Shown in pieces: positions 20,458-59,944 of a DNA stretch of 64,000 nt. Where the stretch lies: the sequence record NC_047880.1; one strand, 5' to 3'. Position 1 is the stretch's first letter. Each line of letters begins with the position of its first letter. A program made the position numbers and the translations under genes. Below the pieces are notes generated by a model. That model did no database searches. It was not told the DNA's origin and worked only from the letters and a program-made list of their open reading frames with translations.

Positions 20458-21684
20458 TTATTGTGCGAACTTTTTCAGTGTTTTTTCCAGTGCCGCGTAG
20501 AACTCGTCATAGGTCTTAAACACACCCTGCTGTTTGAAATGATTCATAGGCAGGTCAGTAGGCAGTTCACCGCCGTCGCGTGTCCACGTAACGATTGTGT
20601 ACATGCCACTACCTTTCAGATCACGCAGATTATCAGTGAAGCCGTTGCTCTTACCGAACAGAACACCAGACTTGGCTTGACTGTCGTTCAGACCGATAGC
20701 AACTTCTGAACCACCGTAGCTCGCTTCGAAAGCATAGGTCTTACTGTTCTTAGGCTTGAGGCCGAAGATTGACAGCAGGTTCTTCGCATCGCTATGCGCA
20801 CCACGCTCAGAAGAGGTGGTATCTTGAATCTGTTCAAACAGCATGTTCATGTCATACTGCTTTTTAGAGTTCTTCGCAGCAGCGCCAGAACTAATCAGAC
20901 CCTTAATGCCTTTAGCCAGAGTAGCAGCAGTCGGACGTTTGAAGTCTTGTCCTACAAAGATACCGCCAGACTTATCGACGCATGAGATCTGCCATGTAGC
21001 AGCACCTTTACTTGTGCGTGAATTGAATGGCGGGTCGATGGACACTGACTTATATTTAGCGCTAGGGTTCTGCGCTTCAAACGTCCACGGACTTGACTGA
21101 CCGTTCGTTTCTGAGTAATGACCGACGAAGGCCAAACCAGTTGCAGAAGAGAGTTGAGCAGCAATGGCATCAATCTTGGCTTGATTGATGGTTTCCATAG
21201 TGCGACCAGTGACTGTAGCCAAATCAACTTTAGGAAGCGCTGCATTTTTGTCTACGCGAGTAGCAACAACTTTTACTTTCTCGGTAGGCTTACCGACAGC
21301 AGCCGCGTCTTCTTTGACAGGGCGAGTTGTCTTAGAAGGTGTGATGTTACCCGCAGTTACCTTGATACGGATAGCGCGTAACGCATTGATGGTAGCCACC
21401 AGCGTCTTAGCTTTGTACAGGTTCTTTACGGCAGTAACGAGAGTCTTACCAGAAGCCTTCTTCATGAAAGCAGTGGCAGTCGCTTCGTCAGCAATCACAT
21501 CAAAGATAGCGGAGAGTTTTGACGTCTCCAGCTCTTTGATTTTGATCAGTTCTTCGAGACGCTTGAGAATGATAGCGGAGTTGCGTCCGAACAGGATTGC
21601 ACCTGTTTCAATCTGCTTTTTAGTAACAGCAGAAGTGGATTCAACAACATCCCCATCGAGATTACCCAATTTAATCAGAGACAT
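20458..21684 (-). CDS. Putative head-internal protein with an N-terminal ESTSA tag
   Basis: MSLIKLGNLDGDVVESTSA matches the shared N-terminal motif family. Confidence 0.6.
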   Translation of the reverse strand: MSLIKLGNLDGDVVESTSAVTKKQIETGAILFGRNSAIILKRLEELIKIKELETSKLSAIFDVIADEATATAFMKKASGKTLVTAVKNLYKAKTLVATINALRAIRIKVTAGNITPSKTTRPVKEDAAAVGKPTEKVKVVATRVDKNAALPKVDLATVTGRTMETINQAKIDAIAAQLSSATGLAFVGHYSETNGQSSPWTFEAQNPSAKYKSVSIDPPFNSRTSKGAATWQISCVDKSGGIFVGQDFKRPTAATLAKGIKGLISSGAAAKNSKKQYDMNMLFEQIQDTTSSERGAHSDAKNLLSIFGLKPKNSKTYAFEASYGGSEVAIGLNDSQAKSGVLFGKSNGFTDNLRDLKGSGMYTIVTWTRDGGELPTDLPMNHFKQQGVFKTYDEFYAALEKTLKKFAQ

Positions 21685-21693
21685 GTTCGTTCC

Positions 21694-22242
21694 TTATTTG
21701 CGCTTTTTAGTCCAGTTGCTGTTATGGTTGTTGCGGTTCTGATTTTGAGTATCATCAGCGCCGTCATCAATCTCTTCGTCTTCTTCGGGCTCGTCTTCTA
21801 ACTCAGGCTCGGCTTCGGCCTCAATCTTTGACGTGTCGAGCACTTGCGCCTGCAGTGGTTGCTGCGATACAGTGCTTGCAACAGCAACATGCTCAGGTGC
21901 TTTCTGTTCTTCAACAGGCTTATCACCAAACACATGAGCGTGAACGTGGTCGCAAGTAAGCAGTGCGCCTTTCTCTTTCAGAATGGCTTGTGCGCGTTCT
22001 TCATCCCAATTAGCCCAAATAATATCAAGGCCTTTGTACGCATAGTGCATACCTTTAGGCAGCTTGCCACGTCCGTTGAATGGCAGACCATTCGAAGGTA
22101 CGGCAGGCTCGAACTCGTCAAGCATTTCCCACTTGCGTTTCGCTTCGATGCACTTAGGGCCCCACACACCATCGCACTGGCCATCGTACAGGCCAAGCAA
22201 TGTCATGATGATTTGAATCTTCTGATAGAAGGTACTAAGCAT
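21694..22242 (-). CDS. Peptidoglycan-binding-domain (PGBD-like) protein with an acidic tail
   Basis: IQIIMTLLGLYDGQCDGVWGPKCIEAKRKWE matches the PG_binding_1 pattern (Q..L..LGY..G..DG..G..T..A...FQ). Confidence 0.6.
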   Translation of the reverse strand: MLSTFYQKIQIIMTLLGLYDGQCDGVWGPKCIEAKRKWEMLDEFEPAVPSNGLPFNGRGKLPKGMHYAYKGLDIIWANWDEERAQAILKEKGALLTCDHVHAHVFGDKPVEEQKAPEHVAVASTVSQQPLQAQVLDTSKIEAEAEPELEDEPEEDEEIDDGADDTQNQNRNNHNSNWTKKRK

Positions 22243-22259
22243 TGATATGTCCTCTGTGA

Positions 22260-22280
22260 AGAAGGGGCCGAAGCCCCATT
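22260..22280 (-). terminator. Intrinsic terminator after the SNF2 gene
   Basis: GGGGC-TTCG-GCCCC followed by TTCTT. Confidence 0.7.
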
Positions 22281-22283
22281 CTA

Positions 22284-25200
22284 TTATACCGACTTGTTCT
22301 TAGAAGCAGTCAGTTTCAACTTGTCGAGCGACTGGATGCACTTCTTCAAGTTCGTGATAGTGTAACCTGCTTTCACGATCTTGTTGATGCGAGCCTTAGC
22401 ACCAGAGACGTTTTTCACGAAACCAATCCACATGCCGGTAGCAATATCAAACGTACCGAACTTACGAGTGTTCGGAACTTTGGTGCCAACGAAACGTTTC
22501 ATTTTCGGGTTCGTGTTCAGGTCGAACATGATGCGCAGACGATCTTCCATCACCATCGGATATGCCTTGACGTGTTGCTTGTCGTTAGCAGTCTTGTGGC
22601 GTACAAGGAAGAACTGTTTCAACTGCGATTGCAGCTTAACAGCCAGCTTGTAGTTGAAGCTCAGACGCGGTGTTGATTCGTCGAAACTGTCCATGATGAA
22701 CTCAAGACGTTTAGCCGATGCGTTATCGAATTCCAATTTCTTGGAGTAGATGAAGTCCATCATCTTTTCGAAGTCCGCATAGTAAGCACAGTCGAAGTAG
22801 ACGTAATCACCAAACTCGGTGAAGTCGAAGTCTTTCAGTGCTTTCGCGTCAGGGTCTGTCGCGTCTGCATACAGCGCTACGAAGCCGTTGTATACGGTAG
22901 GCGTCAGGTCCATTGCCATGTCAGTACCGCTATCATCAAGAGCAATGATGCTGGCACCAGGCTTGGCTTTACGCACAGTGTTCGGCAGTGGAGGCAATTC
23001 AGATGCACGGCGACGGCGTACTTTGCCCGCTGCTTCCTGAACACCTTCATTAACAGGCTTACCTGCTGCTACGTTCTCACGGCGCTTCTTAACGCGAACG
23101 GTCTTGCGTTCCTGAATCTCAACCTTCTCTTCTGTAGCGCGAGTGTCAGCAGTCTGTGATTCATCGGCGATGGTGTCTTCGACTTCAACACGACTTGCTT
23201 CCGCTTCGGCACGTTTGCGATCTTGAGCAGTAGCCCAAGGCTTACGCACAGAGAAGAACTTCTTGAGATCTGCTTTGCCCACAGCAGTAGCAACGTGGAC
23301 TTTGTTTGCAGGAACAGTAACGAGATCTTCTGTACCAGACAAACGCACACGCACTGTGGTGATAGGCGAGTCAGCACGGAGTTTACCGTCAACAACACGA
23401 GCAGTAACACCGACAATCAGACCATTACCGAATTCAGTAACGACAGGCATCTTGTCCATCGCTGCTTTCATCATCGGACCGTCCGCGAAGTTCTGGTTAC
23501 GTGCCCAATCCAGCAGACGCTGTAAGCCCCAGCCATGACGGTCTGGAATCTTCTGGTTTGCTACGACAGGCGCTTGCTCCAGTACGCGGAAGTTTTTCAG
23601 AGGCGGTGTTTCAGGCAGAGGCATCATTGCTGCAACTGTCGTTGTACGCATCTCGTGGAACTCTTGCGATTCGATATCGTTCAGGTCTTTCTTCGCACGG
23701 AAGTATTCGATGAAGTCTTCCATCGTGTTGTTATCGATCAACAACTTCGCGCTCATTTTGATCGGGTCAAGCTTGTATTCGTCCAGCTTGTCGTACTTAG
23801 GATTACCCTTTTCATCGAAGCGGGTTTTCTCAAGCGTCTTCCACATCAGACGAGCAACCTTACCAACTTCTAAGGTCTTGTTCGTCATCACCCAGTCAAT
23901 GAATACGACTTCACGAGGCATATCACCAGGCTTACCGTTTTCATCAAGTTGCGCAGCAGAAACATCAGGACGGAAGATACGAGCAGTAGACTGATCGTAA
24001 GTACCTGGTGACCACGGTGTATCACAGCGGATAATACGACTACCCATCTGCATGTTGTGGCCTTCACTGATAGCCTGTTCGTTCGCAATCAGAATCTGAA
24101 CAGCGTTGTCAGTTTTGAATGCGTCGAGGTTAGCGTCTTTGCTCTGGCCGAGCTTACCGACTTCGCCGTGATAGAGAGCAGCAATTTTCTTGTAGTTCTC
24201 TGGCAGTGCGTTGTAGATAGCGTTAGCAGCACGAACATAGCGAGTGAAGACAATCAGCTTACCTTGTGTTTCAGGCTTCCAGTAATCTGGATCATCACTT
24301 GGTGGAACGTTGGACGGCGGCAGATACTGACGTTTGAACGCATCGGTCTGCTTACGCGCAAGATACTTCTGACCTTGATAGACAGCAATATCCAGCTCAC
24401 GAGGTTCTACGCCCGGACGCCATTCGAAGATCTGTTGGTCAGACTGATTGTTTGGATCAGTATCACGCTCAGGCTGTACTTCGAAGTGTTTCTTAATACG
24501 GTTGATGATAGCGACAACTTTCGCACTGACAAAGTTAGTCACACCAGCATCTTCAAACGTCAGGCGCGCTACGTCATCACCCATTGGGTCAGTCAGTAAC
24601 ATTTCCATACGCTGGAAGTACATGTTCAGGTCAGCGTTACCTGCGAGCAGCGCACCGAGATCATCACCTTCTTCAATCTCAGATACGTCGATGCCGCTTT
24701 CTTCATCTGGACCATCTGCATCACCACCGTCATCTTCGTCGTCTTCCATCGCACGTCTACGCGCTTTAGCCGAGTTAGATGCCTCTTGCAGTTTCTCCAA
24801 CACTTGAGAGTACATCGCTTGATATACTTCCATGTGCAAGTTGGAGTTAGGCACAGATGGATCATCAATCTCTACCTGAATGAAGGTGTCGATTGGGTTA
24901 GGCAGCATGAACGCCCAGTGCTTACGCTTGAACTGAATGAACGCTGTGTGGTTTGCCATACGTGAGTGAGCACGACGAATCATTTCGATATCGTCTTTCG
25001 CACCGTCATACGCTACGTCGAGTGAGTCACCGAACATAGCAGGTGTCATCAACGCGGCTTGACCAACAATGTCACGCACACGGTCTGTTACCAACGTACC
25101 AGTAGCGATACGCGCATAACGAACAGAAGGCGCAGTGAATACCGCTTTCGTGTTGAAGTGCACCTGACTACCAGACTGACCACCGCTGTAGTTCTTAACT

Positions 25201-28139
25201 TTGTGCGACTCATCCAGCAACACGTAGCTGAAATTGAAGCGGTTAACGAACTCAACAGCACCACGTACGCGAATACGGACGCCACCGATATCAACGTCGA
25301 TTGTACCTGTTTGCAGGAAGCTCAGGCCAACGATGAAGATGGTGTTCTGTGGAGCTTGAGAGATAACATCGTACAGACGTTCTTCGCCCCAAGTGTTCAC
25401 AGTGTCAGAAGTAATAGGCACTGCGTTCCAACCGTCTGCGATCTTATGCAGGTCATCACACCAGTTAGCAACAAGGTTAGACGGACAGATGATCAGAGGA
25501 CGAATGTTCTCTTCACCCAAGTCGTTCAACTCTTGAATGGTTGCAGCGATATCGGTCAGGCCGATAATCGTTTTACCACCACCGGGCGCGATAAAGATAG
25601 TCGCATAACGAGGACGTTTACGCAGAGTCTTGTGCGCTTCGAGCTGGTGAGGCAGCAGAGCAGAACCCGCTTTCAGACCAGGAATACGAATGTCTTCGAT
25701 AGTGATTGAACTATCAGGCTGGAGCTTATCAATTTCGTTTTCAGCCGCTTCGAAGATTTCCAGAGACTTAGGAATAACGTCGCTGTACATCGTTGCGAAT
25801 GGCAGGATGATTTGTTGCAGACGATCAGAAGCTGGAGCAGTGTCAGAACCCGCGAGAGAACTGAACAGCGCTTTACGATCACCGTTCTTAATCGCTTCAC
25901 ACATCTGGCGATACAGAGCACCACCGAAGTAGTTGTTCAGTCGAGCCATGTCCATCAGCTTAGAACCAGAACCCATCACGAAGTAGTGCGTGTGAGAAGG
26001 CATTGATTCCATTGCAGTGGTCATGTCACCAGATTCAGCGATTGACTGTGCAGCCAAGTTAGAGCCACGCAGACCGGACGCATCGTTCAGTACGCGAATC
26101 ATAATACGCAACATAGTCAGCGCAGGACGATCGTTCGCAATCTCAGGAACGGAGAAGTCGTTCTCAACAAGATTCTGATACAAGCTCTTGTCCATAGGAC
26201 TTTCGTCGAGAGAAGCGTTCTCTGCATCCATACCAACAGAAGCACGGGCGGACTGTACGAGGCTACGCAGGTCAGTAACGTTCTTACTGCCGAGCATGAA
26301 CTCGTAGGTCTGACAGGTCTGTGCGATGATGTTCAGCAACTCGAATACTTTGCTGTTCTCCGTAGAGTTAAACACAATACGGTTTTCAGTAACACCATCA
26401 ATCAGTCGGCCACGGCCTTGCTCTGCTTTCGCAGCTTCGATCAACAGATCGTTAGCAGGCTTGAATGACACCATACCAGAAGAACTCTGGTTTGAACTGA
26501 TTGCTGCGATAACAGACGACGCAGAACGGAAGTTCGGTGCTTCACCAGGTTGAGCGAAGTCATAACCAAGTGAGTCAGCAACGTCCAGTGCAGAAGGTGC
26601 TTTCATACCAACTGTACGGGTTTCTGAAACAGACAGACCACCACCGTTAGACGTGTTCACTACCAGCGCAAAGTCAGGGTCGATGCCGATACAGATGTTG
26701 CTGAATCGTGCGAGTGATTTCGCTTTGGTCTGAATGTCTTTGTCGAAGTCGAGGTTCTTGTTCTGAATCGCGTAGATGTTTGTACGCAATGTATCGTGGT
26801 CAGTAGACAACGGTACGCCTTTCTCAAACAAGTCTTCCAGCACTTGGTTCAGCGTAGACTCATACGACTTAACCATTTCGACGTCAATCTGGTCGCGTGT
26901 AGGCAGCACAGACAGCGTACCGTTCGGCATGATAGTCATACCGTTATCGTCAGCAACAACATCATGCACACCGTAGCCGAACTTCTCACGAAGCGTTTTC
27001 AGCATAGGCAGCATTGTGGCAGACGTAACGTAACGCGGGATACGCGCAGCACGACGAATACCAGTACGAGTTGTGTTAGACACACGGAAGTAGTACGAAC
27101 TCCAACCCTGGAACCAGCGATACAGACACATGGTCTGGGCTTCTGCGCCTTGAGAAATGTATTCAACCATTTCTTTTTCGAGGCTAACAATCAGACCACC
27201 TTCTGCACGGACGTCAGTTTTGAGTGCAACGTCATTGAACTCAACAGGTGTATCGTTGCTGATCTTCATCGCCTGAATTTTGCGATCAAGCATTGCTTTG
27301 CCCGGAATCGAACGAACACCAATCATCATGAAGTCGCCTAAGGCATCGACAACATTTTTATCCAGATTAGCGAACAGGTCGATATCGAGACGGTTCATTG
27401 ACGGGTCGATTGAACGCAAAAGCGCGTTATAGATAGACCAGTCTTTGTCGAGAGGTACACGGACTACTTTGGTATCAAAGGCGTTTGCGTTTGTACGTGC
27501 TTCACCGAAGATATCTTTATACAGAGTACGTGCTGCTTCGATAGCGCGTTGTGCGATATCAGAGCTGTACACGTTCATGTTGGTTGATTCGAACTGTGCG
27601 TCTTTATCGACACGCGGACGGTCTGAACCAGCATCACCTAACAGGTTGAAGTTACCATAACCAGCCAGAGGGCTAGTTGCACACGGCGTACCGGCCATGA
27701 TGATATCTTTACCGCCAGGGAAGCGCGTACTGTTTTCGATGATAGCGCCAGATGTTCCGCCGAGATGCTGACTCAAAGAGTTCTTGATCTCACGGCTCAA
27801 CTTACTACCATTGAGCTGGGTATTGATACGCATGGTCGCCATTTCGATATTCGCTTTAACACGCTTCACGAAATCATCAGGACTTACTTCCAGCATATCT
27901 TCGAATTCAGCACCGTGAGCAACGATGTAGTTGATCAGGTCGAAGGCCGCATAGATACGAGAGACAGTTGCAGCAGCAAACAGCGCAAGCGGTTCATAGT
28001 AATGACGCGCTTTACTGTTGGTGTACATCTTCGTCATCTTCGCATCAAACTCAGGAGGCAAGGACTTAACAGCAAGAGCCTCATTGAATGATTCGGCAAT
28101 TTGCTGAGTAGCCGTAGCGGACGTACTGATATTAATCAT
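22284..28139 (-). CDS. Giant SNF2-family helicase/translocase (1951 aa)
   Basis: APGGGKT, LLDESHKVKN, IATGT, LIVFTRY, ISEGHNMQ, PWSP..YDQSTARIFR; long unique N- and C-terminal extensions. Confidence 0.85.
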   Translation of the reverse strand: MINISTSATATQQIAESFNEALAVKSLPPEFDAKMTKMYTNSKARHYYEPLALFAAATVSRIYAAFDLINYIVAHGAEFEDMLEVSPDDFVKRVKANIEMATMRINTQLNGSKLSREIKNSLSQHLGGTSGAIIENSTRFPGGKDIIMAGTPCATSPLAGYGNFNLLGDAGSDRPRVDKDAQFESTNMNVYSSDIAQRAIEAARTLYKDIFGEARTNANAFDTKVVRVPLDKDWSIYNALLRSIDPSMNRLDIDLFANLDKNVVDALGDFMMIGVRSIPGKAMLDRKIQAMKISNDTPVEFNDVALKTDVRAEGGLIVSLEKEMVEYISQGAEAQTMCLYRWFQGWSSYYFRVSNTTRTGIRRAARIPRYVTSATMLPMLKTLREKFGYGVHDVVADDNGMTIMPNGTLSVLPTRDQIDVEMVKSYESTLNQVLEDLFEKGVPLSTDHDTLRTNIYAIQNKNLDFDKDIQTKAKSLARFSNICIGIDPDFALVVNTSNGGGLSVSETRTVGMKAPSALDVADSLGYDFAQPGEAPNFRSASSVIAAISSNQSSSGMVSFKPANDLLIEAAKAEQGRGRLIDGVTENRIVFNSTENSKVFELLNIIAQTCQTYEFMLGSKNVTDLRSLVQSARASVGMDAENASLDESPMDKSLYQNLVENDFSVPEIANDRPALTMLRIMIRVLNDASGLRGSNLAAQSIAESGDMTTAMESMPSHTHYFVMGSGSKLMDMARLNNYFGGALYRQMCEAIKNGDRKALFSSLAGSDTAPASDRLQQIILPFATMYSDVIPKSLEIFEAAENEIDKLQPDSSITIEDIRIPGLKAGSALLPHQLEAHKTLRKRPRYATIFIAPGGGKTIIGLTDIAATIQELNDLGEENIRPLIICPSNLVANWCDDLHKIADGWNAVPITSDTVNTWGEERLYDVISQAPQNTIFIVGLSFLQTGTIDVDIGGVRIRVRGAVEFVNRFNFSYVLLDESHKVKNYSGGQSGSQVHFNTKAVFTAPSVRYARIATGTLVTDRVRDIVGQAALMTPAMFGDSLDVAYDGAKDDIEMIRRAHSRMANHTAFIQFKRKHWAFMLPNPIDTFIQVEIDDPSVPNSNLHMEVYQAMYSQVLEKLQEASNSAKARRRAMEDDEDDGGDADGPDEESGIDVSEIEEGDDLGALLAGNADLNMYFQRMEMLLTDPMGDDVARLTFEDAGVTNFVSAKVVAIINRIKKHFEVQPERDTDPNNQSDQQIFEWRPGVEPRELDIAVYQGQKYLARKQTDAFKRQYLPPSNVPPSDDPDYWKPETQGKLIVFTRYVRAANAIYNALPENYKKIAALYHGEVGKLGQSKDANLDAFKTDNAVQILIANEQAISEGHNMQMGSRIIRCDTPWSPGTYDQSTARIFRPDVSAAQLDENGKPGDMPREVVFIDWVMTNKTLEVGKVARLMWKTLEKTRFDEKGNPKYDKLDEYKLDPIKMSAKLLIDNNTMEDFIEYFRAKKDLNDIESQEFHEMRTTTVAAMMPLPETPPLKNFRVLEQAPVVANQKIPDRHGWGLQRLLDWARNQNFADGPMMKAAMDKMPVVTEFGNGLIVGVTARVVDGKLRADSPITTVRVRLSGTEDLVTVPANKVHVATAVGKADLKKFFSVRKPWATAQDRKRAEAEASRVEVEDTIADESQTADTRATEEKVEIQERKTVRVKKRRENVAAGKPVNEGVQEAAGKVRRRRASELPPLPNTVRKAKPGASIIALDDSGTDMAMDLTPTVYNGFVALYADATDPDAKALKDFDFTEFGDYVYFDCAYYADFEKMMDFIYSKKLEFDNASAKRLEFIMDSFDESTPRLSFNYKLAVKLQSQLKQFFLVRHKTANDKQHVKAYPMVMEDRLRIMFDLNTNPKMKRFVGTKVPNTRKFGTFDIATGMWIGFVKNVSGAKARINKIVKAGYTITNLKKCIQSLDKLKLTASKNKSV

Positions 28140-31554: not shown

Positions 31555-31562
31555 AAAATTAG
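31555..31562 (-). promoter_or_regulatory. Class-A motif CTAATTTT
   Basis: Intergenic before 30719..31531. Confidence 0.65.
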
Positions 31563-33846: not shown

Positions 33847-35135
33847 TACTTAACGGATTGTTTCAGTAAACGTTTCTGCTGCGGGTTGAGACCCATGACT
33901 TCTGCGATCTGGTCAATCTTCGCAAGAGTCATAACACCCTTAGCAGTACCGGAAGAAGAGGTCAGGCTGATCTTAACGAACTCACGACCGTTACGACCTT
34001 TGACAATCTGATGGATAAGATTGTTCTTGCCACCACGACCAGCACGAAGTACGCTTGACGCCATACCCAGGATTTCAACAACTGCTTCACGCTTCTCATT
34101 CGCTGTAAGTCCAGGAACGAGACGCACATACAGGCTGTCGTTTTGCACACGCACGTTGTCGAAGATTTCACGCTTCTTACCGCGAATCGTATGTTCAGCT
34201 TGACCCAGCATCGAAGTATCACGCAGGTTCTGTGTGGTACGGTTGATAGGCTTACGCTCGCTGTAGTTCAAGAAACCATCCACAGCTAACAGACTGTTGA
34301 TAGCACGTTTCAGTGAAGGACCTGTTTCGACTAAGCGGCCCATTGGGAATGAACCCGGAACCTTTTCGTCTACCAGAGTAGTCACGTAGTTGCTACTGAT
34401 GCCTGATGCGATTGCGATCTGAGTAGACAGCACGACTGCATACGCAGGGTAGTGCATGTTGTCAGAGTTAACGAACCCGTCAACGAACACGTAGGTCTGG
34501 AATACAATCGGGTCAGTACCAGACGCGATGAAAGTACGTGTACGAATTTTGGTGTACTGCTCTTTGTTCAGAATCTTTTTCAGGTAAGTAGCGATTGCAC
34601 CGACCAGTTTAAGATGTTCTTGTGGAGCGCCGTTCTTAACGTCAATGCTCATGAGGCGGACGAACTGCGATTGCTGTTCTTTAGCCTGAGTAATAACGTT
34701 CAACAACGACTTAGCCGCGCTACCCTGATCTTTGAAAGCAGTGAAGGTGCGGCTGTTCAGAATTTGATATGCTACGGACAACTCACTGATTGCCTGAGTC
34801 AACTGAGCAACCTGCGCGTTATATTTCGCTTTATTCTGCACGTCAGAGATATCAATCTTGGACAGATCGATAACCTGATTAAGCTCAATTGATTTTGCCT
34901 GTTTGCCTTTGATTGAACCTTCGATATCGGCAAGTTCAATCGTCTTAGCACTAAGGGACTGTAGCTTCTTGGGGATGGTAACAGACGTGGCGGTAGAGAC
35001 AATGTGCTCTACAACAGAGCGGAATTCCTTGGCTGTACGTGCACCACGCAATGCGACCATGTTCCCAGAGGCATAGTTAACAGCAGTGCTGATACTGCTA
35101 ACTTCATTGTTTTTGGCAATCTTAGCCATGATCAT
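33846..35135 (-). CDS. Putative virion protein with N-terminal SISTA/SLSA sites
   Basis: First gene after the CTAATTTT motif at 35167. Confidence 0.65.
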   Translation of the reverse strand: MIMAKIAKNNEVSSISTAVNYASGNMVALRGARTAKEFRSVVEHIVSTATSVTIPKKLQSLSAKTIELADIEGSIKGKQAKSIELNQVIDLSKIDISDVQNKAKYNAQVAQLTQAISELSVAYQILNSRTFTAFKDQGSAAKSLLNVITQAKEQQSQFVRLMSIDVKNGAPQEHLKLVGAIATYLKKILNKEQYTKIRTRTFIASGTDPIVFQTYVFVDGFVNSDNMHYPAYAVVLSTQIAIASGISSNYVTTLVDEKVPGSFPMGRLVETGPSLKRAINSLLAVDGFLNYSERKPINRTTQNLRDTSMLGQAEHTIRGKKREIFDNVRVQNDSLYVRLVPGLTANEKREAVVEILGMASSVLRAGRGGKNNLIHQIVKGRNGREFVKISLTSSSGTAKGVMTLAKIDQIAEVMGLNPQQKRLLKQSVK

Positions 35136-35166: not shown

Positions 35167-35174
35167 AAAATTAG
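35167..35174 (-). promoter_or_regulatory. Class-A motif CTAATTTT
   Basis: Intergenic before 33846..35135. Confidence 0.65.
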
Positions 35175-37267: not shown

Positions 37268-38263
37268 TTATTTCTTACCCTGCTTCAAGCTGGAATCGTA
37301 ATGGATTCCTTTAGTCTCAAGCAGACCTTCGAGTTCTTCAACGTCGATGTTGTGCTTCTTAGCAGCCGCTGCATTAAGATGAATGGTTTTATCATTCTTA
37401 ATGTCGTAGAGAGTGATGCCGCCTTTTTTATCAGTAGGACCGTACGACATGTTCTTCAAGCTAGAAGCTTTGAAGTCGCCACCGATAAATTCTTTAAGAC
37501 CTTTAAGGTTCTTGGCATTCTCTTTTTTCTGTTCAGCCAGAGCTGCGGCGCGTCGTTCAGCACCACCAGGTTTCATCGTCTTGCCGAAACGGTTGTTGCG
37601 CTGCGCTTCAAGCTCTTTCGCTTTAGCCGGAGTGTGCGCACCAGTCACTGCGCCTTTGCGCTTGGCAGCAATTTTTGCTTCAATTTTCTTCTTGCCAATC
37701 CTGACAGACTCTGCGTGACTTGGCTTCTTACCACTGCTTGCCAGAATTTTTGCAACGTCACCGAACTTAGGCTTAAAGGTACCTTTCTTGCCTTTGATAC
37801 GAACCTGATCAACTTGCGCAGCATTAACTGTACGCAGTGAACGGCCTGGACCAGTAGTCAGAGTGATTACAGACGCAGGAAGAGCAAGTGACAGAGAAGA
37901 CAGACCCGCCTTACGCAGGGAAGCGGCCGCAGTACGCAGCAACTCTTTTGCCGCTTTGGCGTCAGCGCTTGCTTTGGTTTTCAGAGTCTTGTACTTGGTG
38001 ACCAGCTTTGTCTTAGCAGCACCCTCTGCACGGGACGCCTGACTATGGGCTGTAGTAGAATCAATCTTAGCCTTAAGAGCACCAGCCGCAAGCTTCTTCG
38101 CTTTCTTAGCAGCAGACAGAGCGGCAGCCACGGTAGCTTTGTGTGACTTGTCGATGACAAGCGTGGTAGCACCGCTAACCTGAGCAAAGATATGCGCAGG
38201 TGTTTTGGCGGCGGATTCAGAAACGATATTGCTACCGTCGAGTTTTAAACGAATGAGTGACAT
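37268..38263 (-). CDS. Lys/Ala-rich putative head-internal protein (paralog family)
   Basis: MSLIRLKLDGSNIVSESAAKTP; paralogous to 41824..42879 and 49357..50127; own late motif. Confidence 0.7.
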   Translation of the reverse strand: MSLIRLKLDGSNIVSESAAKTPAHIFAQVSGATTLVIDKSHKATVAAALSAAKKAKKLAAGALKAKIDSTTAHSQASRAEGAAKTKLVTKYKTLKTKASADAKAAKELLRTAAASLRKAGLSSLSLALPASVITLTTGPGRSLRTVNAAQVDQVRIKGKKGTFKPKFGDVAKILASSGKKPSHAESVRIGKKKIEAKIAAKRKGAVTGAHTPAKAKELEAQRNNRFGKTMKPGGAERRAAALAEQKKENAKNLKGLKEFIGGDFKASSLKNMSYGPTDKKGGITLYDIKNDKTIHLNAAAAKKHNIDVEELEGLLETKGIHYDSSLKQGKK

Positions 38264-38298: not shown

Positions 38299-38306
38299 AA
38301 AATTAG
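38299..38306 (-). promoter_or_regulatory. Class-A motif CTAATTTT
   Basis: Intergenic before 37268..38263. Confidence 0.65.
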
Positions 38307-38855: not shown

Positions 38856-39698
38856 CTACATGGTAGTGACTAGACCTGAGTTGAACGCGAAACTTGGGCG
38901 AGTTCCTGGAGAGAGCGGGTTGTTAGATTGTCCCGATACTAAAATTTCATTGGCAACAAACTTAATCAACATACCATCTACAGGACTTGTAATCGCATCA
39001 GTCATTGTAGGAGTTTCATCTGAGCCAACGTTGTCTATCATCATAGTAACTTCTGCGGCACGTTGTATAAATGCTCCGCCATATCCAGGCTGAGTGTGTC
39101 CAGATGCGTAGAAGCCTGTGATGATTGTTTGATCAGTACCTCCAGAAAGATTCAGTGCCTGTGTAGGTCGGTTGAACGTACGGTTCTCATATTGAGAAGG
39201 TGCGCCGGAATAGACTGTGTAGTTTTGTGGAGTACCTGAACCCCGCATCACAGTCATGTTGATGAAGCTGTCGCCAGGTCTGTATGCACCAAGCTGACCA
39301 AATTCAGGATAGGTAACGTCAATAGATGTGGTTTCATTTGTGTGCAACGCACTTGGCACCATTGAACAAACGTTTGGGCTGTATGGCAATACATAGTCAG
39401 CACTGAGAGAACCTGAACTGATATTGTTTGCGCCCGTCTGAGGACTATCTATCTTAGCAGCAAAGGTAGTGCCTCCTAAGTATTTAAAGTTGGTGCAGTA
39501 ATACTTGTTGCTCTTGCGTCCGGAAACGACATTAACAATCCCTTTTCCTACAATACCTCGGGCCTTAGGTGCAACCGTTTTAAGCGTTGTCCTATCTACA
39601 ATGCTGTCAATATCAACACCGTCAGCTCTATCGAACAGAAAGATTTCAGGGAAGATATCCGTCACAGCAAGATGATTTGCAGTTGAGATAAATTGCAT
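38856..39698 (-). CDS. Hypothetical beta-rich protein (AT-rich paralog pair, member 1)
   Basis: N- and C-termini resemble 39767..40723; begins MQFISTA. Confidence 0.7.
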   Translation of the reverse strand: MQFISTANHLAVTDIFPEIFLFDRADGVDIDSIVDRTTLKTVAPKARGIVGKGIVNVVSGRKSNKYYCTNFKYLGGTTFAAKIDSPQTGANNISSGSLSADYVLPYSPNVCSMVPSALHTNETTSIDVTYPEFGQLGAYRPGDSFINMTVMRGSGTPQNYTVYSGAPSQYENRTFNRPTQALNLSGGTDQTIITGFYASGHTQPGYGGAFIQRAAEVTMMIDNVGSDETPTMTDAITSPVDGMLIKFVANEILVSGQSNNPLSPGTRPSFAFNSGLVTTM

Positions 39699-41312: not shown

Positions 41313-41824
41313 CACTGGTCCTTAATCATTTTGACTCTGGTGTGATTGAATATTCCATACGTCGGAACATCGTGGTTCGCACCTTCGTTACCTAAGATGG
41401 AGTCATATTCAGCGGAAGCAAGAATCCGACTTATCTCTGCATACTCGTCCCACCACATATAGACACGCTTATGCGTAGAGGCAGGAATGAGATGTGAGAG
41501 TTTGTCCAGACGTTCAATAAGTTTAAGCGCTTCATCACGACCAACAAGCTTCTGTTGGAATGACTCCATGATAAGAGCTTTAACCCGCCTATAGATTTCA
41601 GCAAACTTCACTTCTGTCCAGAGGGAACGGAAGTTCAGACTAGCGGTGCGGCCTGGGTCTGCATGAAAACTGTAGAGTCGCCCATCTTCTGCATACATTT
41701 CAGCATACGCACGGTCTTGAGTTACCCAAGTCATGTGTAGCTTCTTCGCTTGTTCTTCGGACCAGTCGGAGGCTAGTCCTCGGTAGAAGATTTTGGGCGA
41801 TGACAGACTAACGAAAATTTGCAT
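41312..41824 (-). CDS. ADP-ribosyltransferase-like protein (ART-PolyVal type) with an N-terminal tag
   Basis: IFYRG...TWVTQDRAYAEMYA..GRLY...EYDSIL...YGIFNHTRVK matches the ART-PolyVal pattern; start moved to MQIFVSLSS (TAATG overlap). Confidence 0.65.
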   Translation of the reverse strand: MQIFVSLSSPKIFYRGLASDWSEEQAKKLHMTWVTQDRAYAEMYAEDGRLYSFHADPGRTASLNFRSLWTEVKFAEIYRRVKALIMESFQQKLVGRDEALKLIERLDKLSHLIPASTHKRVYMWWDEYAEISRILASAEYDSILGNEGANHDVPTYGIFNHTRVKMIKDQ

Positions 41825-42879
41825 TAGCGACCGGAAGTGCCTTTTTCCCAAGCTGTCTGTGAATCTATGCGATTAGGCTTCTCGTACTGGCTAAGAGCTT
41901 TTACAGCACCGCGTAGTTGTTTACGAGCAGTGGCTTCTGGCACAGGTGAATTGGAACCACCACCGTTGCCTCCAAAGTTTGCATACAGTTTCCACCTGCC
42001 GTCAGGCTGTTTCGACATTCGGAAGCTACCTGTACCATGCTTGTATTCGAATGAGTTACCAGATGCAATAATCTTGCCGCGTGATACACCATCTTTAGTA
42101 GTCATGGTCTTGATCAGGCTCTCCATTTTCGGTGAAGGGTTTGTGCCTGAAACTTTCACTGCACCTGCTTTCTTACCTGTTAAGGCAGCAGTGCGCTTTT
42201 CTTTCAGCTCTTTTGCTTTAGCCTTAGTCATCGCACCAGTCACTGCATCTTTGCGTTTGACAGTCTTCGGTGCATCAACCGGCTTCGGCTTGTCGCTCGG
42301 CTTAGCTCCTGGTGTAGATTTCTTAGCAGCAGAGGAAGCACCGATCTTATCGAACTTATCACCTGTTGCAAAACGAGGTTTGAGTAACGATGGACTGCGA
42401 TTCGTACCGCTCGCTTTCACCCAGAAGTTATCAGCCTTAGCTTTACCGATCTTACTGATCGTGTAATCAGGTTGCGTCGAAGTGATGTAAGACGGACGGA
42501 TAGGCGTGGACAAAACTTTCAATCCCGCTTTGGCGAGTGAAGCGATTGCAGATGCAGCCAGCTTCTTAGCGGCAGCAACATCCTTTTTAATCACAGCGTT
42601 GTTGGCTTTGATCTTAGCGCTGATAGGAGCTTTCTTCTCAGTGTCTCGCGTTGCTTTCAACTTGAGTTTCAGCTTTGCAGTAGCCTGACCAAGTTTAGCA
42701 GCAGCCACGCCTAAGGTCTTCGCTTGCTTCAATGAAGTAGCGGCCTTAGCAACAACAGGCTTGTACTTAGAGTTGATAACAATCGTCGGGCCGTTAGAAG
42801 ATTTGACGATGTGATACGAAGGTTTCTTTACAGCAGATTCTGAGGCCAATGTCTCAGCCACATTAAGTTTGATTTTCAT
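41824..42879 (-). CDS. Lys/Ala-rich putative head-internal protein (paralog family)
   Basis: MKIKLNVAETLASESAVKKPSY; paralog of 37268..38263. Confidence 0.7.
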   Translation of the reverse strand: MKIKLNVAETLASESAVKKPSYHIVKSSNGPTIVINSKYKPVVAKAATSLKQAKTLGVAAAKLGQATAKLKLKLKATRDTEKKAPISAKIKANNAVIKKDVAAAKKLAASAIASLAKAGLKVLSTPIRPSYITSTQPDYTISKIGKAKADNFWVKASGTNRSPSLLKPRFATGDKFDKIGASSAAKKSTPGAKPSDKPKPVDAPKTVKRKDAVTGAMTKAKAKELKEKRTAALTGKKAGAVKVSGTNPSPKMESLIKTMTTKDGVSRGKIIASGNSFEYKHGTGSFRMSKQPDGRWKLYANFGGNGGGSNSPVPEATARKQLRGAVKALSQYEKPNRIDSQTAWEKGTSGR

Positions 42880-42887
42880 TTTAGTCC

Positions 42888-43490
42888 TTACACCAAGGCT
42901 CGTGCTGGTGCATCAAAGTTTTTGCCTGCCGAGTAATCACCGAGAGCAGCGTACAGAGAATCACGCATCATGTTCTGGATGATATCAGAGTTATGTGCTG
43001 ACGCATCTTGAAACGCGACTTCAATCGCCAGAGTGCGAGGGTTGACCACAGCATAACGAATAGGTGCGATACCCTGACAGCGACCCCAAGAGTCTACACG
43101 ATCTTGCAGGCCAGCACTGAACGGGATTTTGAAGTCAGTCAACTGAAACACAGCAGACTGAATTGGAGGTGGAGCAGAGAGCGACATGAATTTACCTGTC
43201 GGACTCAGCTTCTCCATAGTTGTAGACGCATCAAACACGGACTGGAAGTTGTCTGCGATTGATGTGATGTTCTTCAACTTATAGCTGTTTGTCGAAAGGC
43301 CCTTGCGAATCAACTGTGCTACCTGAACTTCGTAGTCACCAGTATCGCCTTGAGCATAAGAGACAAAAGCGTAGAGAGCAACACCATTGGCTTCACGCAG
43401 CAGACGATGATCGAGTACACGGAACCCGACCACTTTAGTCAATGCTTGCGCGTTCATTTGGGTTGCTGCCAAAGAAACGAAGATCTTCAT
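42888..43490 (-). CDS. Putative head-internal protein
   Basis: MKIFVSLAA tag; late operon. Confidence 0.65.
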   Translation of the reverse strand: MKIFVSLAATQMNAQALTKVVGFRVLDHRLLREANGVALYAFVSYAQGDTGDYEVQVAQLIRKGLSTNSYKLKNITSIADNFQSVFDASTTMEKLSPTGKFMSLSAPPPIQSAVFQLTDFKIPFSAGLQDRVDSWGRCQGIAPIRYAVVNPRTLAIEVAFQDASAHNSDIIQNMMRDSLYAALGDYSAGKNFDAPARALV

Positions 43491-43822
43491 TAACGCATCT
43501 TGCTCAGTGCGTCTTTGGCTTTGGCCAGAGTAGGTTGAACATCGGAATCACCGAACTCAGCATTGATAGTGATACCGACTTCGATCACGTTGAAGCCTTC
43601 ATCTTCGTCCGCCATAACAACACCGAAGCGAGCAGTTTCACCATTGTACTTGATGAAACGGTAGTCGAGGATATCGTTCGGACCAGAGATATCAGACGGC
43701 ATACCATCAGCCACTAACATGGCGTACAGAGATTTCTTGTCCAGACCTTTCATGAAGAAAGCTGTAGGGACGCTTGACTCAGATGGTACTGCGTCTTTCA
43801 AATTCAATTTAATAACGGTCAT
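43490..43822 (-). CDS. Putative head-internal protein
   Basis: MTVIKLNLKDAVPSESS tag; late operon. Confidence 0.65.
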   Translation of the reverse strand: MTVIKLNLKDAVPSESSVPTAFFMKGLDKKSLYAMLVADGMPSDISGPNDILDYRFIKYNGETARFGVVMADEDEGFNVIEVGITINAEFGDSDVQPTLAKAKDALSKMR

Positions 43823-44421: not shown

Positions 44422-44429
44422 AAAATTAG
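44422..44429 (-). promoter_or_regulatory. Class-A motif CTAATTTT
   Basis: Intergenic before the endolysin operon. Confidence 0.65.
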
Positions 44430-48906: not shown

Positions 48907-49344
48907 TTAATACTTCTTAGGTTTCTTAATTGTGGATTTAGGTCGCTTGATTTTACGCAGCGCTTTACGAGCCTCAACAATATCTTTGGCCAGAGTAGCA
49001 CGACGAGCTTTGGTCTGCTCTGTGTCTTGCTCTGTACCTTTAAGTTTGTCGAGACGATTCCACTCGCTAACAAGACGGTCAACGACAGCCGCTCTGCTCA
49101 CACGCTGCTGGTTAACGCGAACGATATCCTGATTCGTTTTAACGGAGCGTTGTGTGTCTTGCACTTCGGTACGTGCAGACTTCACGCCCTTAGTATCACC
49201 GTCAGATTGTTTGTCGTTGAGCTTCTTACGCGCAAGCTGTGATCTACGTTGTGCACCTTTCAAGTCATCCTTAGAGTTCTCCAAGCTGACCTTCGTATCT
49301 TCAAGAGGACTTGTGCGAGCACTCAGGCTGATAAGAATTTTCAT
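48907..49344 (-). CDS. Basic coiled-coil putative head-internal protein
   Basis: MKILISLSA tag; K/R-rich. Confidence 0.7.
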   Translation of the reverse strand: MKILISLSARTSPLEDTKVSLENSKDDLKGAQRRSQLARKKLNDKQSDGDTKGVKSARTEVQDTQRSVKTNQDIVRVNQQRVSRAAVVDRLVSEWNRLDKLKGTEQDTEQTKARRATLAKDIVEARKALRKIKRPKSTIKKPKKY

Positions 49345-49356: not shown

Positions 49357-50127
49357 CTACTTGTACTTGGAGAGATACTGATCGAAGATGCGAGTAGCCT
49401 TATTTGCATCGACAGGACCTGAAGAAATAGTAGGACCACTTCCCCAATACTTAGCGACGTATGTGTCGTGGCCTGAGTCTTCTAATACGACAGTACCGTC
49501 AGGAACTGAGATGTGTAGAAGGTCACCACTGAGTTGAATCTTCTTCTGTGGTATATCATCATGCTTACCGATGATGCTTTTCAACGCAGACAGAAGAACA
49601 GGATTAGCTTTCTTCTTCGACTGGTCTGCATACGCAGCAGCAGGACCGCTCAGCTTTTCAGCAGGCTTAGCAGTTGTACCAGCTGCGGCTTCTTCGAAAG
49701 CTGTAGTCGGCATGAACAACACACTCAACCAACCAGTTACACCACGTGCACCGAATTTATCAATGTGCTTATCGGGACTCTCACTTTCGGACCAAAGCTT
49801 TGACAACGTTAGAGGAAGTTTGAGTCCACTGAGACCTTCGGTTTTAGCAATCTCTGTGATTTCTCCCATAAACTTCTCACCGAGATCTCTATTGTGCTTG
49901 TCTTTGGCTTCAAGCTTTTTATGTTCGTCTGGAGTAAGCTTCTTACCTTTAACGCTCTTTGCGTTTTTAATCACTTCGTTTCGAACAGACAACGCAGCGT
50001 TAAGACGAACTTGGATTTTATTGATAGCCGCCCGTTTAGAGTTAGGTACTGCGACGATTTTCTTGCCTTCGTATTCAGTGATAATGTACGAAGGTGTTTT
50101 GGCAGACAGGCTTATAAAAATTTTCAT
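49357..50127 (-). CDS. Putative head-internal protein (K/A-rich paralog family)
   Basis: Start moved to MKIFISLSAKTPSY (RBS AGGAG). Confidence 0.7.
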   Translation of the reverse strand: MKIFISLSAKTPSYIITEYEGKKIVAVPNSKRAAINKIQVRLNAALSVRNEVIKNAKSVKGKKLTPDEHKKLEAKDKHNRDLGEKFMGEITEIAKTEGLSGLKLPLTLSKLWSESESPDKHIDKFGARGVTGWLSVLFMPTTAFEEAAAGTTAKPAEKLSGPAAAYADQSKKKANPVLLSALKSIIGKHDDIPQKKIQLSGDLLHISVPDGTVVLEDSGHDTYVAKYWGSGPTISSGPVDANKATRIFDQYLSKYK

Positions 50128-50144
50128 ACATGCTCCTGAAAGAG

Positions 50145-50170: not shown

Positions 50171-50268
50171 TTAGATGGCGCGCTATGCACCCGACTTGTT
50201 AGGTCTTCTACTCTTATTTAGCCTCGTTGTAGTCTACGAGGAGATATGGATCACCTCCCCAGATGGTA

Positions 50269-50802
50269 CTACAATTCGAGTTCTTCGTGCTCGGCTTCCA
50301 TTTCAGCGGCAGACCAAGAACGAATCACGGATGCGTTACCACGATTACCAGTCAGCATTGTTTTAACTGCTGGTGATGCTTCTACTTCTGCGTAGTGGTT
50401 GGCGAGAGCTTTCTCGTCTTTGAACCACATAAGTGACGATGCACCTTTTGAGCATACTAAGAACTGAACAGGCTTTCCATTACCGACGTTCAACGTCATG
50501 TAATAATCACCAACGCCATTAACACTGAGCATAGGCATTGGCTTCATCACGTATTGGAAGTCGTCCGCTGTTTTAAGCGTCTTATCGCCGAGCAACCAGA
50601 TAGCACCTTCTTCACCTGAGCGAATAGCACTGAGTTGACCACGGCGCGTAGAGATTGTACCAAACGTTTCTTGATCGAAACGGGACAGACCGAAGATAAG
50701 GCTAGCGAGCTTCTTCAGGTCAGGAGTCGTGCAAGGACTATGAATGATAGCCTTACCCTCAGACTCAAGTATGATTTTCGAAAGGGAAACAAAGATTTCC
50801 AT
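50269..50802 (-). CDS. Putative head-internal protein
   Basis: MEIFVSLSK tag; CTAATTTC motif upstream. Confidence 0.65.
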   Translation of the reverse strand: MEIFVSLSKIILESEGKAIIHSPCTTPDLKKLASLIFGLSRFDQETFGTISTRRGQLSAIRSGEEGAIWLLGDKTLKTADDFQYVMKPMPMLSVNGVGDYYMTLNVGNGKPVQFLVCSKGASSLMWFKDEKALANHYAEVEASPAVKTMLTGNRGNASVIRSWSAAEMEAEHEELEL

Positions 50803-50835: not shown

Positions 50836-50843
50836 GAAATTAG
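50836..50843 (-). promoter_or_regulatory. Class-A variant CTAATTTC
   Basis: Intergenic before 50269..50802. Confidence 0.6.
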
Positions 50844-58899: not shown

Positions 58900-58919
58900 A
58901 TCGTGTTTACCTGATTTTC

Positions 58920-59280
58920 TATCAGCTATTTACAGATATAGAACCCAAAGCTATTCAAGGCTATACAAGATAGATCATCATAGGAAGGATAGCTACAGCG
59001 GTACAGCTATACAGCTCATAGATAGCTACGATTGTTATTGCTGGTACACATCTTTAGGCGGCACGTTTTTCAAAGAGCGAAAATGAGAAAACGATACCAA
59101 TACCTGCCCAAAGCATACCAACTAACAGCCCAGCAGAGCATTCTAGCCGACAAACCTAGGTCGTCTAAACCGTGTAAATAATTTCTAAAAAGGGAGCAGT
59201 TTTCTGAAAAAACACCGCAATTTAGAGAAAAATGAGGGCAAAACCGAATAAAATCAAAGGTTTAACCCTCGTTCGACAGA
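58920..59280. other. Long intergenic region with short GCTA/TAGC repeats and an A-rich tract (candidate origin)
   Basis: No convincing gene; 6-7 [AG]GCTA units in 58923-59030; orphan plus-strand TGTAAATA at 59173. Confidence 0.35.
58927..58935 (-). promoter_or_regulatory. Class-B motif CTGTAAATA
   Basis: Before the TV-Pol-like gene. Confidence 0.7.
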
Positions 59281-59287
59281 AATCAGA

Positions 59288-59944
59288 TCACTTTTTCTGA
59301 GAAACGCGCTGTCCTAATTTGACGCCGATGCTCGTCATAATACGTTTCACTGTTTCGCCGTCATGTTCTTCAATTGCTTGCGCAAGCCGTTCGCCCTGAT
59401 CACGCGATAGCTCAGGCATAACCATTTTAAGCATAGTAGAACGCAGTTTGGCGCTCTTGCTGCGCTTTTTCGACAGCGAAGTCGTTTCCATCTCCTGTGC
59501 TACTCGGCTCATTGTACGCTGGACGCGACGATCAGCGAAGATATCACCAAAGATATCGCCGAATAAGTCTTTGAACGACATACCTCCGCCCATTACATCG
59601 TCCTTTGTGAAACGAACAGGCTGTCCGAGCGCATTAGTTTTAGCGCAATGTGTAGATTCGACAGCGTTTTGAATGCGATCGCCCGTGCGCGTTACTTCGT
59701 CAGGACGTGACGGCTTGCCCTCTGCTCCAGGATTCGTATCACCGTTACGCAGCGCAGGGTCACCTTCAACTTGTTTGTTTTGATCAAACATGTCATCGGC
59801 TGTAGCGCTTTGATTCGGGTCAAACGGAATCTTGCCTGTAAGCTTGTTAGGGTCAGGATACGAACGAGGGATATCAGACGCCGGTTGAGGCATGTTCGTC
59901 ATATCGCCGTTCTTTTCGCTATTCAAACTAATCATTACTCGCAT
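59288..59944 (-). CDS. Putative head-associated protein with an MRVMISLNS tag
   Basis: Start moved to ATG 59944 (RBS AAGGA); N-terminus fits the tag family. Confidence 0.65.
   Translation of the reverse strand: MRVMISLNSEKNGDMTNMPQPASDIPRSYPDPNKLTGKIPFDPNQSATADDMFDQNKQVEGDPALRNGDTNPGAEGKPSRPDEVTRTGDRIQNAVESTHCAKTNALGQPVRFTKDDVMGGGMSFKDLFGDIFGDIFADRRVQRTMSRVAQEMETTSLSKKRSKSAKLRSTMLKMVMPELSRDQGERLAQAIEEHDGETVKRIMTSIGVKLGQRVSQKK

Follow-up and report, generated by a model that had tools for sequence, protein, structure and literature searches.

Shared N-terminal S-x-S peptides on otherwise dissimilar proteins of Erwinia phage vB_EamM_Y3 as probable removable capsid-targeting tags

The window analysed here, a stretch of 64,000 nucleotides, is 100% identical to positions 124001-188000 of the genome of Erwinia phage vB_EamM_Y3 (Sasquatchvirus; 261,365 bp; NC_047880.1), and a window coordinate is the genome coordinate minus 124000. 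Many of its minus-strand genes encode proteins that begin with a similar short peptide built around serine-x-serine (S-x-S) or a close variant, and this N-terminal tag is the subject of the present report. Two forms of the tag were recognised: a short form, M-x-Φ-Φ-[IV]-S-x-[SAN] (Φ, hydrophobic residue), and a long form with the leader M-x-[LV]-I-K-[LI]-x-L and a spacer of 3-6 residues (tag peptide pair: short MKIFISLSA and MSLIRLKLDGSNIVSESA). Nine short-form and five long-form tags were counted in Y3. The genes concerned in the window are given below together with N-termini of orthologues from the related phages Alexandra, Yoloswag and PaBG; the arrow marks the predicted scissile bond.

59918..59944, minus strand: short tag MRVMISLNS of gp220 (218 aa), the second gene behind the heptamer CTAATTT at 61093; Alexandra MKVKISLNS, Yoloswag MKLKINLSES
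50776..50802, minus strand: short tag MEIFVSLSK of gp208 (177 aa); the Alexandra orthologue has the same MEIFVSLSK
50101..50127, minus strand: short tag MKIFISLSA of gp206 (256 aa), which matched no Pfam or PHROG family
49318..49344, minus strand: short tag MKILISLSA of gp205 (145 aa; basic, coiled-coil-looking); Alexandra MKILISLSV, Yoloswag MEILISLSQ
43772..43822, minus strand: long tag MTVIKLNLKDAVPSES↓S of gp196 (110 aa); Alexandra MCLIKLNLDEAVKSTSA
43464..43490, minus strand: short tag MKIFVSLAA of gp195 (200 aa); Alexandra MEIFVSLAK
42832..42879, minus strand: long tag MKIKLNVAETLASES↓A of gp194 (351 aa, K/A-rich), a paralogue of gp187
41312..41824, minus strand: gp193 (170 aa), short tag MQIFVSLSS (41798-41824), then an ART-PolyVal-like domain
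39678..39698, minus strand: N-terminus MQFISTA of gp189, without S-x-S
38210..38263, minus strand: long tag MSLIRLKLDGSNIVSES↓A of gp187 (331 aa, K/A-rich), which adjoins the SbcD gene
35082..35129, minus strand: N-terminal leader MAKIAKNNEVSSIS↓TA of gp184 (427 aa); SSISAS in Alexandra, NSISTS in Yoloswag
22284..28139, minus strand: gp176 (1951 aa, SNF2-type helicase), tag MINISTS↓A (28116-28139); Alexandra MNQMISTSA, Yoloswag MLISTSK, PaBG MGSLFTLNSLSAA
21628..21684, minus strand: long tag MSLIKLGNLDGDVVESTS↓A of gp174 (408 aa); Yoloswag MPLINLNLNTGVASTSA, paralogue gp249 MSLIKLEGVASTSA

All 13 N-termini quoted in the initial annotation were found on the minus strand at the positions given there, and each coincides with the start of an annotated coding sequence (CDS) except that of gp184. 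For the latter the quoted stretch VSSISTA is present, but the annotated start (35129, MAKIAK...) lies 6 nt, or two codons, later than the quoted one (35135). The proposal that MQFISTA of gp189 belongs to the same system probably does not hold, and gp189 was not counted because it belongs to a separate paralogue family with the start MQ[FY][ILV] and no S-x-S (gp189, gp190, three Alexandra copies and two Yoloswag copies, with a weaker match to gp96; window 38856-40702). Similar starts (MQF, MLF, MMY) were seen in gp84-gp93, and the MQ[FY][ILV] start could represent another N-terminal module common to several proteins, perhaps those of tail hairs or fibres. Beyond the window, additional tagged members were gp78, gp120, gp133, gp149, gp231, gp240 and gp249, and there are about 20 tagged candidates per genome.

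The N-terminal statistics cover all 333 annotated CDS of Y3, translated. The pattern ^M.[ILVM][ILVFM][ILV]S.[SAN] matched nine of the 333 N-termini, whereas its internal frequency predicts 0.08 (binomial p=3.5e-16); in column shuffles of the N-termini it matched 0.15 times on average and at most three times. When all six frames of the whole 261-kb genome were scanned with M.[IVLM][FLMI][IV]S[LT], eight matches were obtained, every one at an annotated start (six inside the window, plus gp231 and gp240). The looser pattern [ILVFMA].?S.S[AS] was 3.9 times commoner in the first 25 residues than elsewhere (Fisher p=5e-8). A strict regular expression for the long-form leader matched only two proteins, so the long-form statistics rest on the S-x-S part. 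Chance is thus excluded as the source of the shared N-termini.

The serine codons of the motif vary from copy to copy (AGC, AGT, TCT, TCC, TCA), as do the leucine codons (CTG, TTG, CTT). Since these codons and the upstream DNA differ between copies, the conserved object is the peptide and not a DNA or RNA element. A nucleic-acid or translation-initiation signal (a downstream box or regulatory site, for instance) is accordingly a very improbable source of the likeness: AAA or GAA second codons and A/T-rich starts are indeed common in efficient initiation regions, but serine switches between AGY and TCN and leucine between CTN and TTG, the upstream regions are different, and the motif is internal in the head proteins described below. 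A Sec-type signal peptide was also considered and rejected, as only 3-4 hydrophobic residues lie between the Met and S-x-S, against a core of about 10-15 in such signals.

In the syntenic regions of Alexandra and Yoloswag, orthologues retain their tags. The same tag was also found on non-orthologous proteins of the relatives (MELMVSLSALPP, 629 aa; MEIVVSLSALPP, 717 aa; MEIVISFSAD; MALIKINLAGAVESVSAKK), and further, different tagged proteins were found in Alexandra, Yoloswag, JA11 and NCTB. The tags of NCTB, whose major capsid protein (MCP) is 47% identical to that of Y3, include MKIISISAR, MKIVSISAQ, MLISLSAA and MLISISLG. The set of tagged genes turns over fast between close relatives; a tagged protein of 629-717 aa, for example, is encoded after SbcD in Alexandra and Yoloswag and has no counterpart in Y3. 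An open reading frame of 545 aa in Yoloswag (25414-27051 of the stretch analysed) consists of a gp187-like part followed by a gp195-like part behind a single tag, MEKVVSLSA; in Y3 the two parts are encoded by separate genes, and each product has a tag. The tag thus behaves modularly, with one copy per polypeptide.

A consensus was derived from 46 tags of five phages, with positions numbered from the presumed scissile bond. Serine occupies P3 in 46/46 and P1 in 42/46, P1' is Ala in 28/46, P4 is Ile or Val in 31/46, P5 is hydrophobic, and P2 is free (L, E, T, I, V). The gp133 orthologues illustrate this at one and the same position, where S-E-S, S-A-S, S-V-S and S-L-S all occur. A P2 that varies between fixed P3 and P1 residues resembles a protease subsite pattern, and this pattern rules out Glu as P1. 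Glu is absent from the motif of every short tag (S-L-S, S-L-A, S-L-N) and elsewhere occurs only in the variable middle position.

The same motif was then found in proteins of the head. The MCP (gp139) contains LVHSQS↓AAS at residues 66-69, 18.6% of the way along the chain; the linker that holds it is poorly conserved and precedes the conserved HK97-like body. Each of the 27 database homologues with 70% identity or more retains S-x-S in this linker while the neighbouring residues vary (composition-preserving shuffles: 8.2 expected, maximum 16 in 2000), and [SA]-x-[SA]-[SA] is present in 58 of 91 more distant homologues against 13.8 expected; as the MCP homologues are related, the shuffle figures overstate independence. 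It has been reported that the MCP of PaBG, a phage of the same group, loses about 20% of its mass on maturation and that several of its virion proteins are processed (PMC7412058). In phage G, the deposited MCP chain 6WKK (280 aa) starts a few residues downstream of the equivalent of Y3 Ala69; little weight was given to this start, since the deposited chain may differ from the mature protein, and the phage G paper does not give the MCP cleavage site.

The largest excess of S-x-S-[ASG] in the proteome was found in gp141, which has 16 sites against 2.8 in shuffles (maximum 9 in 5000), about six times the expectation, most of them with a hydrophobic P5 (IESES↓G, VDSES↓S, FDSLS↓A). It was followed by the portal gp6 (5 against 0.9), gp116 (unknown function) and gp138, a small acidic protein of the head module. 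Homologues of gp141 carry 14 sites in Yoloswag, 13 in JA11, 7 in NCTB and about 6 in PaBG. The gp141 gene (genome 106082-108157) lies between the protease/gp142 genes and gp140/MCP and is annotated as an 'ATPase', but no ATPase domain was matched. The protein has long D/E repeats interrupted by S-E-S-[GS] and looks like a scaffolding or core protein.

The protease in question, gp143, is encoded outside the window and belongs to PHROG 18299, 'head maturation protease'. Its own N-terminus reads ...VRSES↓FDV, and in most of its 67 homologues a leader that varies in length is followed by [S/A/C]-x-[S/A/C]-F. An AlphaFold2 (AF2) model of the Alexandra orthologue (85% identical; predicted local distance difference test, pLDDT, 86) was compared with the PDB by Foldseek, and the top three matches were T4 gp21 (5JBL), with E 0.02-0.06, probability 0.75-0.84 and a template modelling (TM) score, normalised to the target, of 0.5. 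The fold of herpesvirus assemblin is also that of phage prohead proteases, T4 gp21 included. His124 and Ser181 are invariant in the 67 homologues and are the candidate catalytic residues, and the model is consistent with gp143 being an assemblin-like serine protease. The S-x-S core of the tags is therefore also the motif found where the MCP linker, gp141, the portal and the protease N-terminus would be expected to be cut.

These head-protein sites bear on two other explanations. The tag might be an uncleaved docking peptide that binds a chaperone, the portal, a tail or whisker component or a host factor, the S-x-S of the head proteins being a coincidence. The leaders are alternating-hydrophobic and β-strand-like, as such a peptide might be, and gp133 lies between tail-tube genes. 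Coincidence fits poorly, however, with S-x-S in every one of the 27 MCP linkers at the expected boundary of the Δ-domain and with its excess in the scaffold-like protein, and the free P2 between fixed P3 and P1 is typical of protease subsites; the tag is moreover of low confidence in the AF2 model of gp193 (see below). We regard docking as unlikely. Somewhat less unlikely, but still improbable, is that S-x-S-A is a protease site and nothing more, with recruitment by other features or partners. The internal S-x-S sites of the MCP, the portal and gp141 indeed lack the shared hydrophobic leader, and the cargo of SPN3US and phiKZ carries long and diverse propeptides (PMC5694885). Against it, the residues upstream of the site (M-x-Φ-Φ-[IV] or MxLIKLxL) are conserved like the site itself and are the sole feature common to the cargo, and a bare site would not need to stand at the extreme N-terminus, six residues from the Met, in nine proteins.

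Some evidence that tagged proteins reach the virion can be borrowed from PaBG, for which 14 virion bands have been identified (Table 1 of PMC7412058); its gene numbers were mapped via the GenBank supplement of that paper. Band 1 (221 kDa) is gp202, which aligns with tagged gp176 over some 1,900-2,000 residues in BLASTP (E=0) and is its orthologue; the N-terminus of gp202 is MGSLFTLNSLSAAIDA (...LNSLSAA). Band 9 is gp83, whose N-terminus MLIKINLLEAVAAKA resembles the Alexandra long form MALIKINLAGAVESVSA, with Ala replacing the Ser of the Erwinia clade. No alignment was obtained between PaBG gp83 and gp196, so the likeness is confined to about 15 N-terminal residues and was judged by eye. Band 8 is gp191, a basic protein of 332 aa adjoining the SbcD gene, like Y3 gp187 (331 aa). 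The paper on Dickeya jumbo phages contains no proteomics.

The transcriptional context of the tagged genes was also considered. The heptamer CTAATTT (often CGCTAATTT) occurs 24 times in the genome, and 16 copies are intergenic, correctly oriented and 20-77 nt upstream of a start codon. It takes the form (C/A)(G)CTAATTT and is frequently preceded by a terminator-like structure, a GC-rich hairpin followed by a T-run. The remark in the initial annotation that most tagged genes lie in CTAATTTT operons agrees with this, CTAATTT being found 29-77 nt upstream of gp221, gp208, gp197, gp187, gp185, gp184 and gp181. The copies in the window are as follows.

61087..61093, minus strand: CTAATTT, 29 nt upstream of gp221; heads gp221 and gp220
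50837..50843, minus strand: CTAATTT, 41 nt upstream of gp208
44423..44429, minus strand: CTAATTT, 35 nt upstream of the endolysin gene gp197, with a hairpin before it; heads gp197, gp196, gp195, gp194 and gp193
38300..38306, minus strand: CTAATTT, 43 nt upstream of gp187
36069-36075, minus strand: CTAATTT, heads a unit in the window
35168..35174, minus strand: CTAATTT, 45 nt upstream of gp184
31556..31562, minus strand: CTAATTT, 37 nt upstream of gp181; heads the closely packed run gp181 to gp174
5919-5925, minus strand: CTAATTT, heads a unit in the window

The genes gp206 and gp205 lie downstream of gp208 on the same strand, with a terminator-like hairpin before gp206. This hairpin and the start of gp206 are overlapped on the plus strand by gp207 (45 aa, window 50084-50221), which is likely a spurious gene call. 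Structural genes also stand behind CTAATTT (tail sheath gp135, PAAR gp115, gp111, gp156 and gp138), as do the tagged genes gp149 and gp249 beyond the window, the latter an isolated plus-strand gene, and the variants TTAATTT/ATAATTT precede gp141, at the head of the MCP operon, and gp158. CTAATTT is probably the late promoter of this phage group. Tagged genes are concentrated in the minus-strand block, which is read as late (16 of 148 minus-strand genes, against 3 of 185 on the plus strand; p=5e-4).

The proteins behind the tags were described in the initial annotation as unrelated to one another, which is only partly true owing to two paralogue pairs. An all-against-all BLASTP search of the tagged proteins returned these pairs (gp187/gp194, E~1e-8; gp174/gp249, E 2e-9, gp249 being outside the window) and a trio with the KMPT-N domain (gp133, gp149, gp142), and no pairwise similarity beyond the tag was detected by BLASTP among the remaining proteins. 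By eye, gp206 had seemed to share its post-tag region with gp187 and gp194, but BLASTP gave no support for this. None of eight proteins scanned against Pfam and PHROG (gp189, gp196 and the six short-form proteins) matched a named family. In composition, gp205 is basic, gp187 and gp194 are rich in K/A, and gp231 and gp240 are strongly acidic; gp193 is small and globular, gp120 is a Nudix protein, and several tagged proteins are of low complexity from residue 10 onward (judged by eye). The acidic ones might be DNA mimics.

In gp176, annotated 'DNA helicase', Pfam found SNF2-rel_dom and Helicase_C, with neither a MuF fusion nor a methylase domain, and the protein looks like a DarB-like virion protein. 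For gp193, an AF2 model was built from nine sequences (pLDDT 77; predicted TM score, pTM, 0.72). Its first strand covers residues 11-15, and residues 1-7 have pLDDT below 50 and no secondary structure, which places the tag outside the predicted fold; M1, S6, L7 and S8 are invariant in all eight aligned homologues. Foldseek against BFVD matched the model to ART-PolyVal-like proteins (E 2e-5 to 7.5e-4), among them a 'capsid maturation protease and MuF-like fusion protein', and against the PDB gave nothing significant, with weak matches to the ADP-ribosyltransferase (ART) fold only. Judged by the model, gp193 looks like an ART-PolyVal-like effector.

The KMPT-N domain occurs on the tagged proteins gp133 and gp149 and on the untagged gp142, at the following genome coordinates.

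108235-109347: gp142, KMPT-N
99626-100297: gp133, KMPT-N with tag
115442-117322: gp149, KMPT-N with tag

The gp142 gene adjoins the prohead protease gene, and its product, which is untagged, joins KMPT-N to a metallopeptidase-like HExxH motif (THELAHF). In gp133 and gp149 the tag and KMPT-N are present without the peptidase part, and the C-terminal end of gp149 is a very long acidic tail.

It could be argued from the two pairs and the trio, which are real paralogue groups, that the tagged proteins descend from one ancestor or have one fold in common, of which the N-terminus (in the latter case the first strand) is all that has not diverged past recognition. This is highly improbable, since the other tagged proteins differ so widely (ART-PolyVal, SNF2, Nudix, acidic low-complexity, basic coiled-coil-looking) and are not similar beyond the tag, the tag of gp193 lies outside the modelled fold, and KMPT-N is found without a tag in gp142 and with one in gp133 and gp149.

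The explanation that we prefer, with a probability of about 0.65, is that the shared N-termini are removable propeptides that double as capsid-targeting tags. In this scheme the tagged proteins would be made late in infection, and the short hydrophobic leader, in its short or long form, would bring each of them into the assembling prohead. There gp143, with its T4-gp21-like predicted fold, would remove the leader at Φ-[IV]-S-x-S↓A; it would also cut the Δ-domain off the MCP, fragment the acidic scaffold-like gp141 and trim the portal. The mature cargo would stay in the head with the DNA and be delivered to the next host, and would comprise the SNF2 helicase, the ART-PolyVal-like enzyme, the K/A-rich proteins that look DNA-binding, the acidic proteins and the KMPT-N proteins. 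The idea of a serine-based targeting and cleavage code, put forward in the initial annotation, thus gained in silico support from the motif in head proteins, the PaBG virion bands, the late units, the gp193 model and the cargo domains.

The case rests wholly on sequence, comparative and borrowed proteomic evidence, and several observations weigh against it. The leader of eight residues is shorter than the 10-20 residues of the T4 capsid-targeting sequence (CTS). For gp143, no Pfam or PDB sequence match was found, nor any sequence-level link to a protease family, and the Foldseek match to gp21 is weak (E=0.02, TM ~0.5). The conservation tests use related, non-independent sequences. The head proteins of Lu11 and RSL1 are almost entirely without S-x-S-[ASG], and their gp141 homologues have essentially none. 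Unexpected matches, which may be due to chance, include the Nudix protein gp120 as cargo and internal sites in the DNA polymerase gp173 and the UvsX-like gp243, and the tagged gp231 and gp240, in a plus-strand block, have no CTAATTT within 90 nt upstream. Finally, the virion proteomics comes from PaBG and not from Y3 or another phage of the S-x-S clade; in PaBG the motif seems to have shifted to Ala (AVAAKA), and its gp191 has neither a tag nor BLAST similarity to gp187. The abstract of the Y3 paper reportedly mentions no virion proteome.

The proposed system has close parallels among known ones. The CTS of T4, 10-20 aa long, is carried by IPI-III, Alt and gp24 and is removed by gp21 (Mullaney and Black 1996 via PMC5694885; PMC9026906). 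Like the Y3 tag, it is a short N-terminal peptide on otherwise unrelated proteins. In T4 these lie inside the head and include an ADP-ribosyltransferase (Alt) and small charged proteins, the peptide ends in the cleavage motif of the protease, and gp21 also processes the MCP, scaffold and portal; the arrangement proposed for Y3 would be the same. However, T4 cuts at (L/I)-x-E↓, whereas the candidate Y3 code is S-x-S↓A with no requirement for Glu, the leader sequence is unrelated, and the Y3 leaders, read here from sequence, fall into two classes of 8-9 aa and 14-19 aa. The gp175-/gp245-type proteases of phiKZ, 201phi2-1 and SPN3US cut at (S/A/G)-x-E↓ (PMC5694885, PMC10052503), and the characterised T4-like and phiKZ-like enzymes all cut after Glu (PMC5694885). 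In these jumbo phages numerous packaged or ejected proteins are processed at a motif of three residues with a small P3, one enzyme also cuts the MCP and portal, and additional sites in propeptides or scaffold yield small fragments; Y3 would resemble them in all of this. They differ in that P1 is Glu and not Ser (Ala or Cys in distant relatives of Y3), and in that the propeptides of SPN3US often exceed 100 aa and vary in sequence, whereas the Y3 leaders are mostly very short and near-identical between cargo proteins. Y3 belongs to the PaBG/Lu11 group and not to the phiKZ-like phages (PMC7412058).

Herpesvirus assemblin cuts at (V/L/I)-x-A↓S, and signal peptidase I follows a small-x-small (A-x-A) rule. 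Both resemble the Y3 motif in having small uncharged residues at the scissile bond and hydrophobic residues upstream, but the residues and the register differ, and the Y3 leader is far too short for Sec.

The domains of the tagged proteins recall the polyvalent proteins, whose ART-PolyVal, SNF2 ATPase and metallopeptidase-associated domains are thought to be packaged and injected (PMC5512222). In the same context, P1 DarB is a virion-head SNF2/methylase protein and T4 Alt a packaged ART (PMC5512222). The repertoire is shared (SNF2-type ATPase, ART-PolyVal, metallopeptidase-associated KMPT-N), but in polyvalent proteins the domains are fused in one giant polypeptide, often with MuF, whereas Y3 encodes them on different polypeptides that are tagged individually. 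The chances are about even for the wider proposal that a large, mostly uncultured clade of jumbo phages (the group of Y3, Alexandra, Yoloswag, JA11, NCTB and PaBG; more than 100 MCP clusters in metagenomes) has a new S-x-S↓A prohead protease and a portable tag of 8-9 residues on about 20 fast-changing cargo proteins per genome. Such a system would be, in effect, a polyvalent protein in pieces, with injected effectors (SNF2 helicase, ART, DNA binders, acidic proteins) readable from the genome sequence. In the literature searched, no S-x-S prohead-protease motif or CTS was described for this clade.

If the interpretation is right, gp143 and its relatives would form a new specificity class of phage prohead protease, and the packaged and injected proteins of a whole jumbo-phage group could be predicted from genome sequence. 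Proteins of this sort, which are difficult to find by other means, are leading candidates for roles in anti-defence and host takeover. A very short tag of this kind might also serve to bring foreign proteins into large capsids, a use to which the T4 CTS has been put, and gp141 (scaffold-like), gp176 (DarB-like) and gp193 (ART-PolyVal-like) would have to be re-annotated.

Two further observations were made. An MCP 89% identical to that of Y3 is encoded on a 267-kb contig deposited as Salmonella enterica serovar Infantis, and a 78-kb record, 'Alcaligenes phage Afa-NA1', contains an MCP (75% identical) and a helicase (55% identical); perhaps the host range of Y3-like jumbo phages extends beyond Erwinia and Dickeya, unless the two records are incomplete or wrongly labelled. 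In the window itself, the tail proteins gp154-gp157 (600-6628) are mutually related: gp154 resembles gp157 at its C-terminus (55% identity) and gp155 and gp156 in its N-terminal region.

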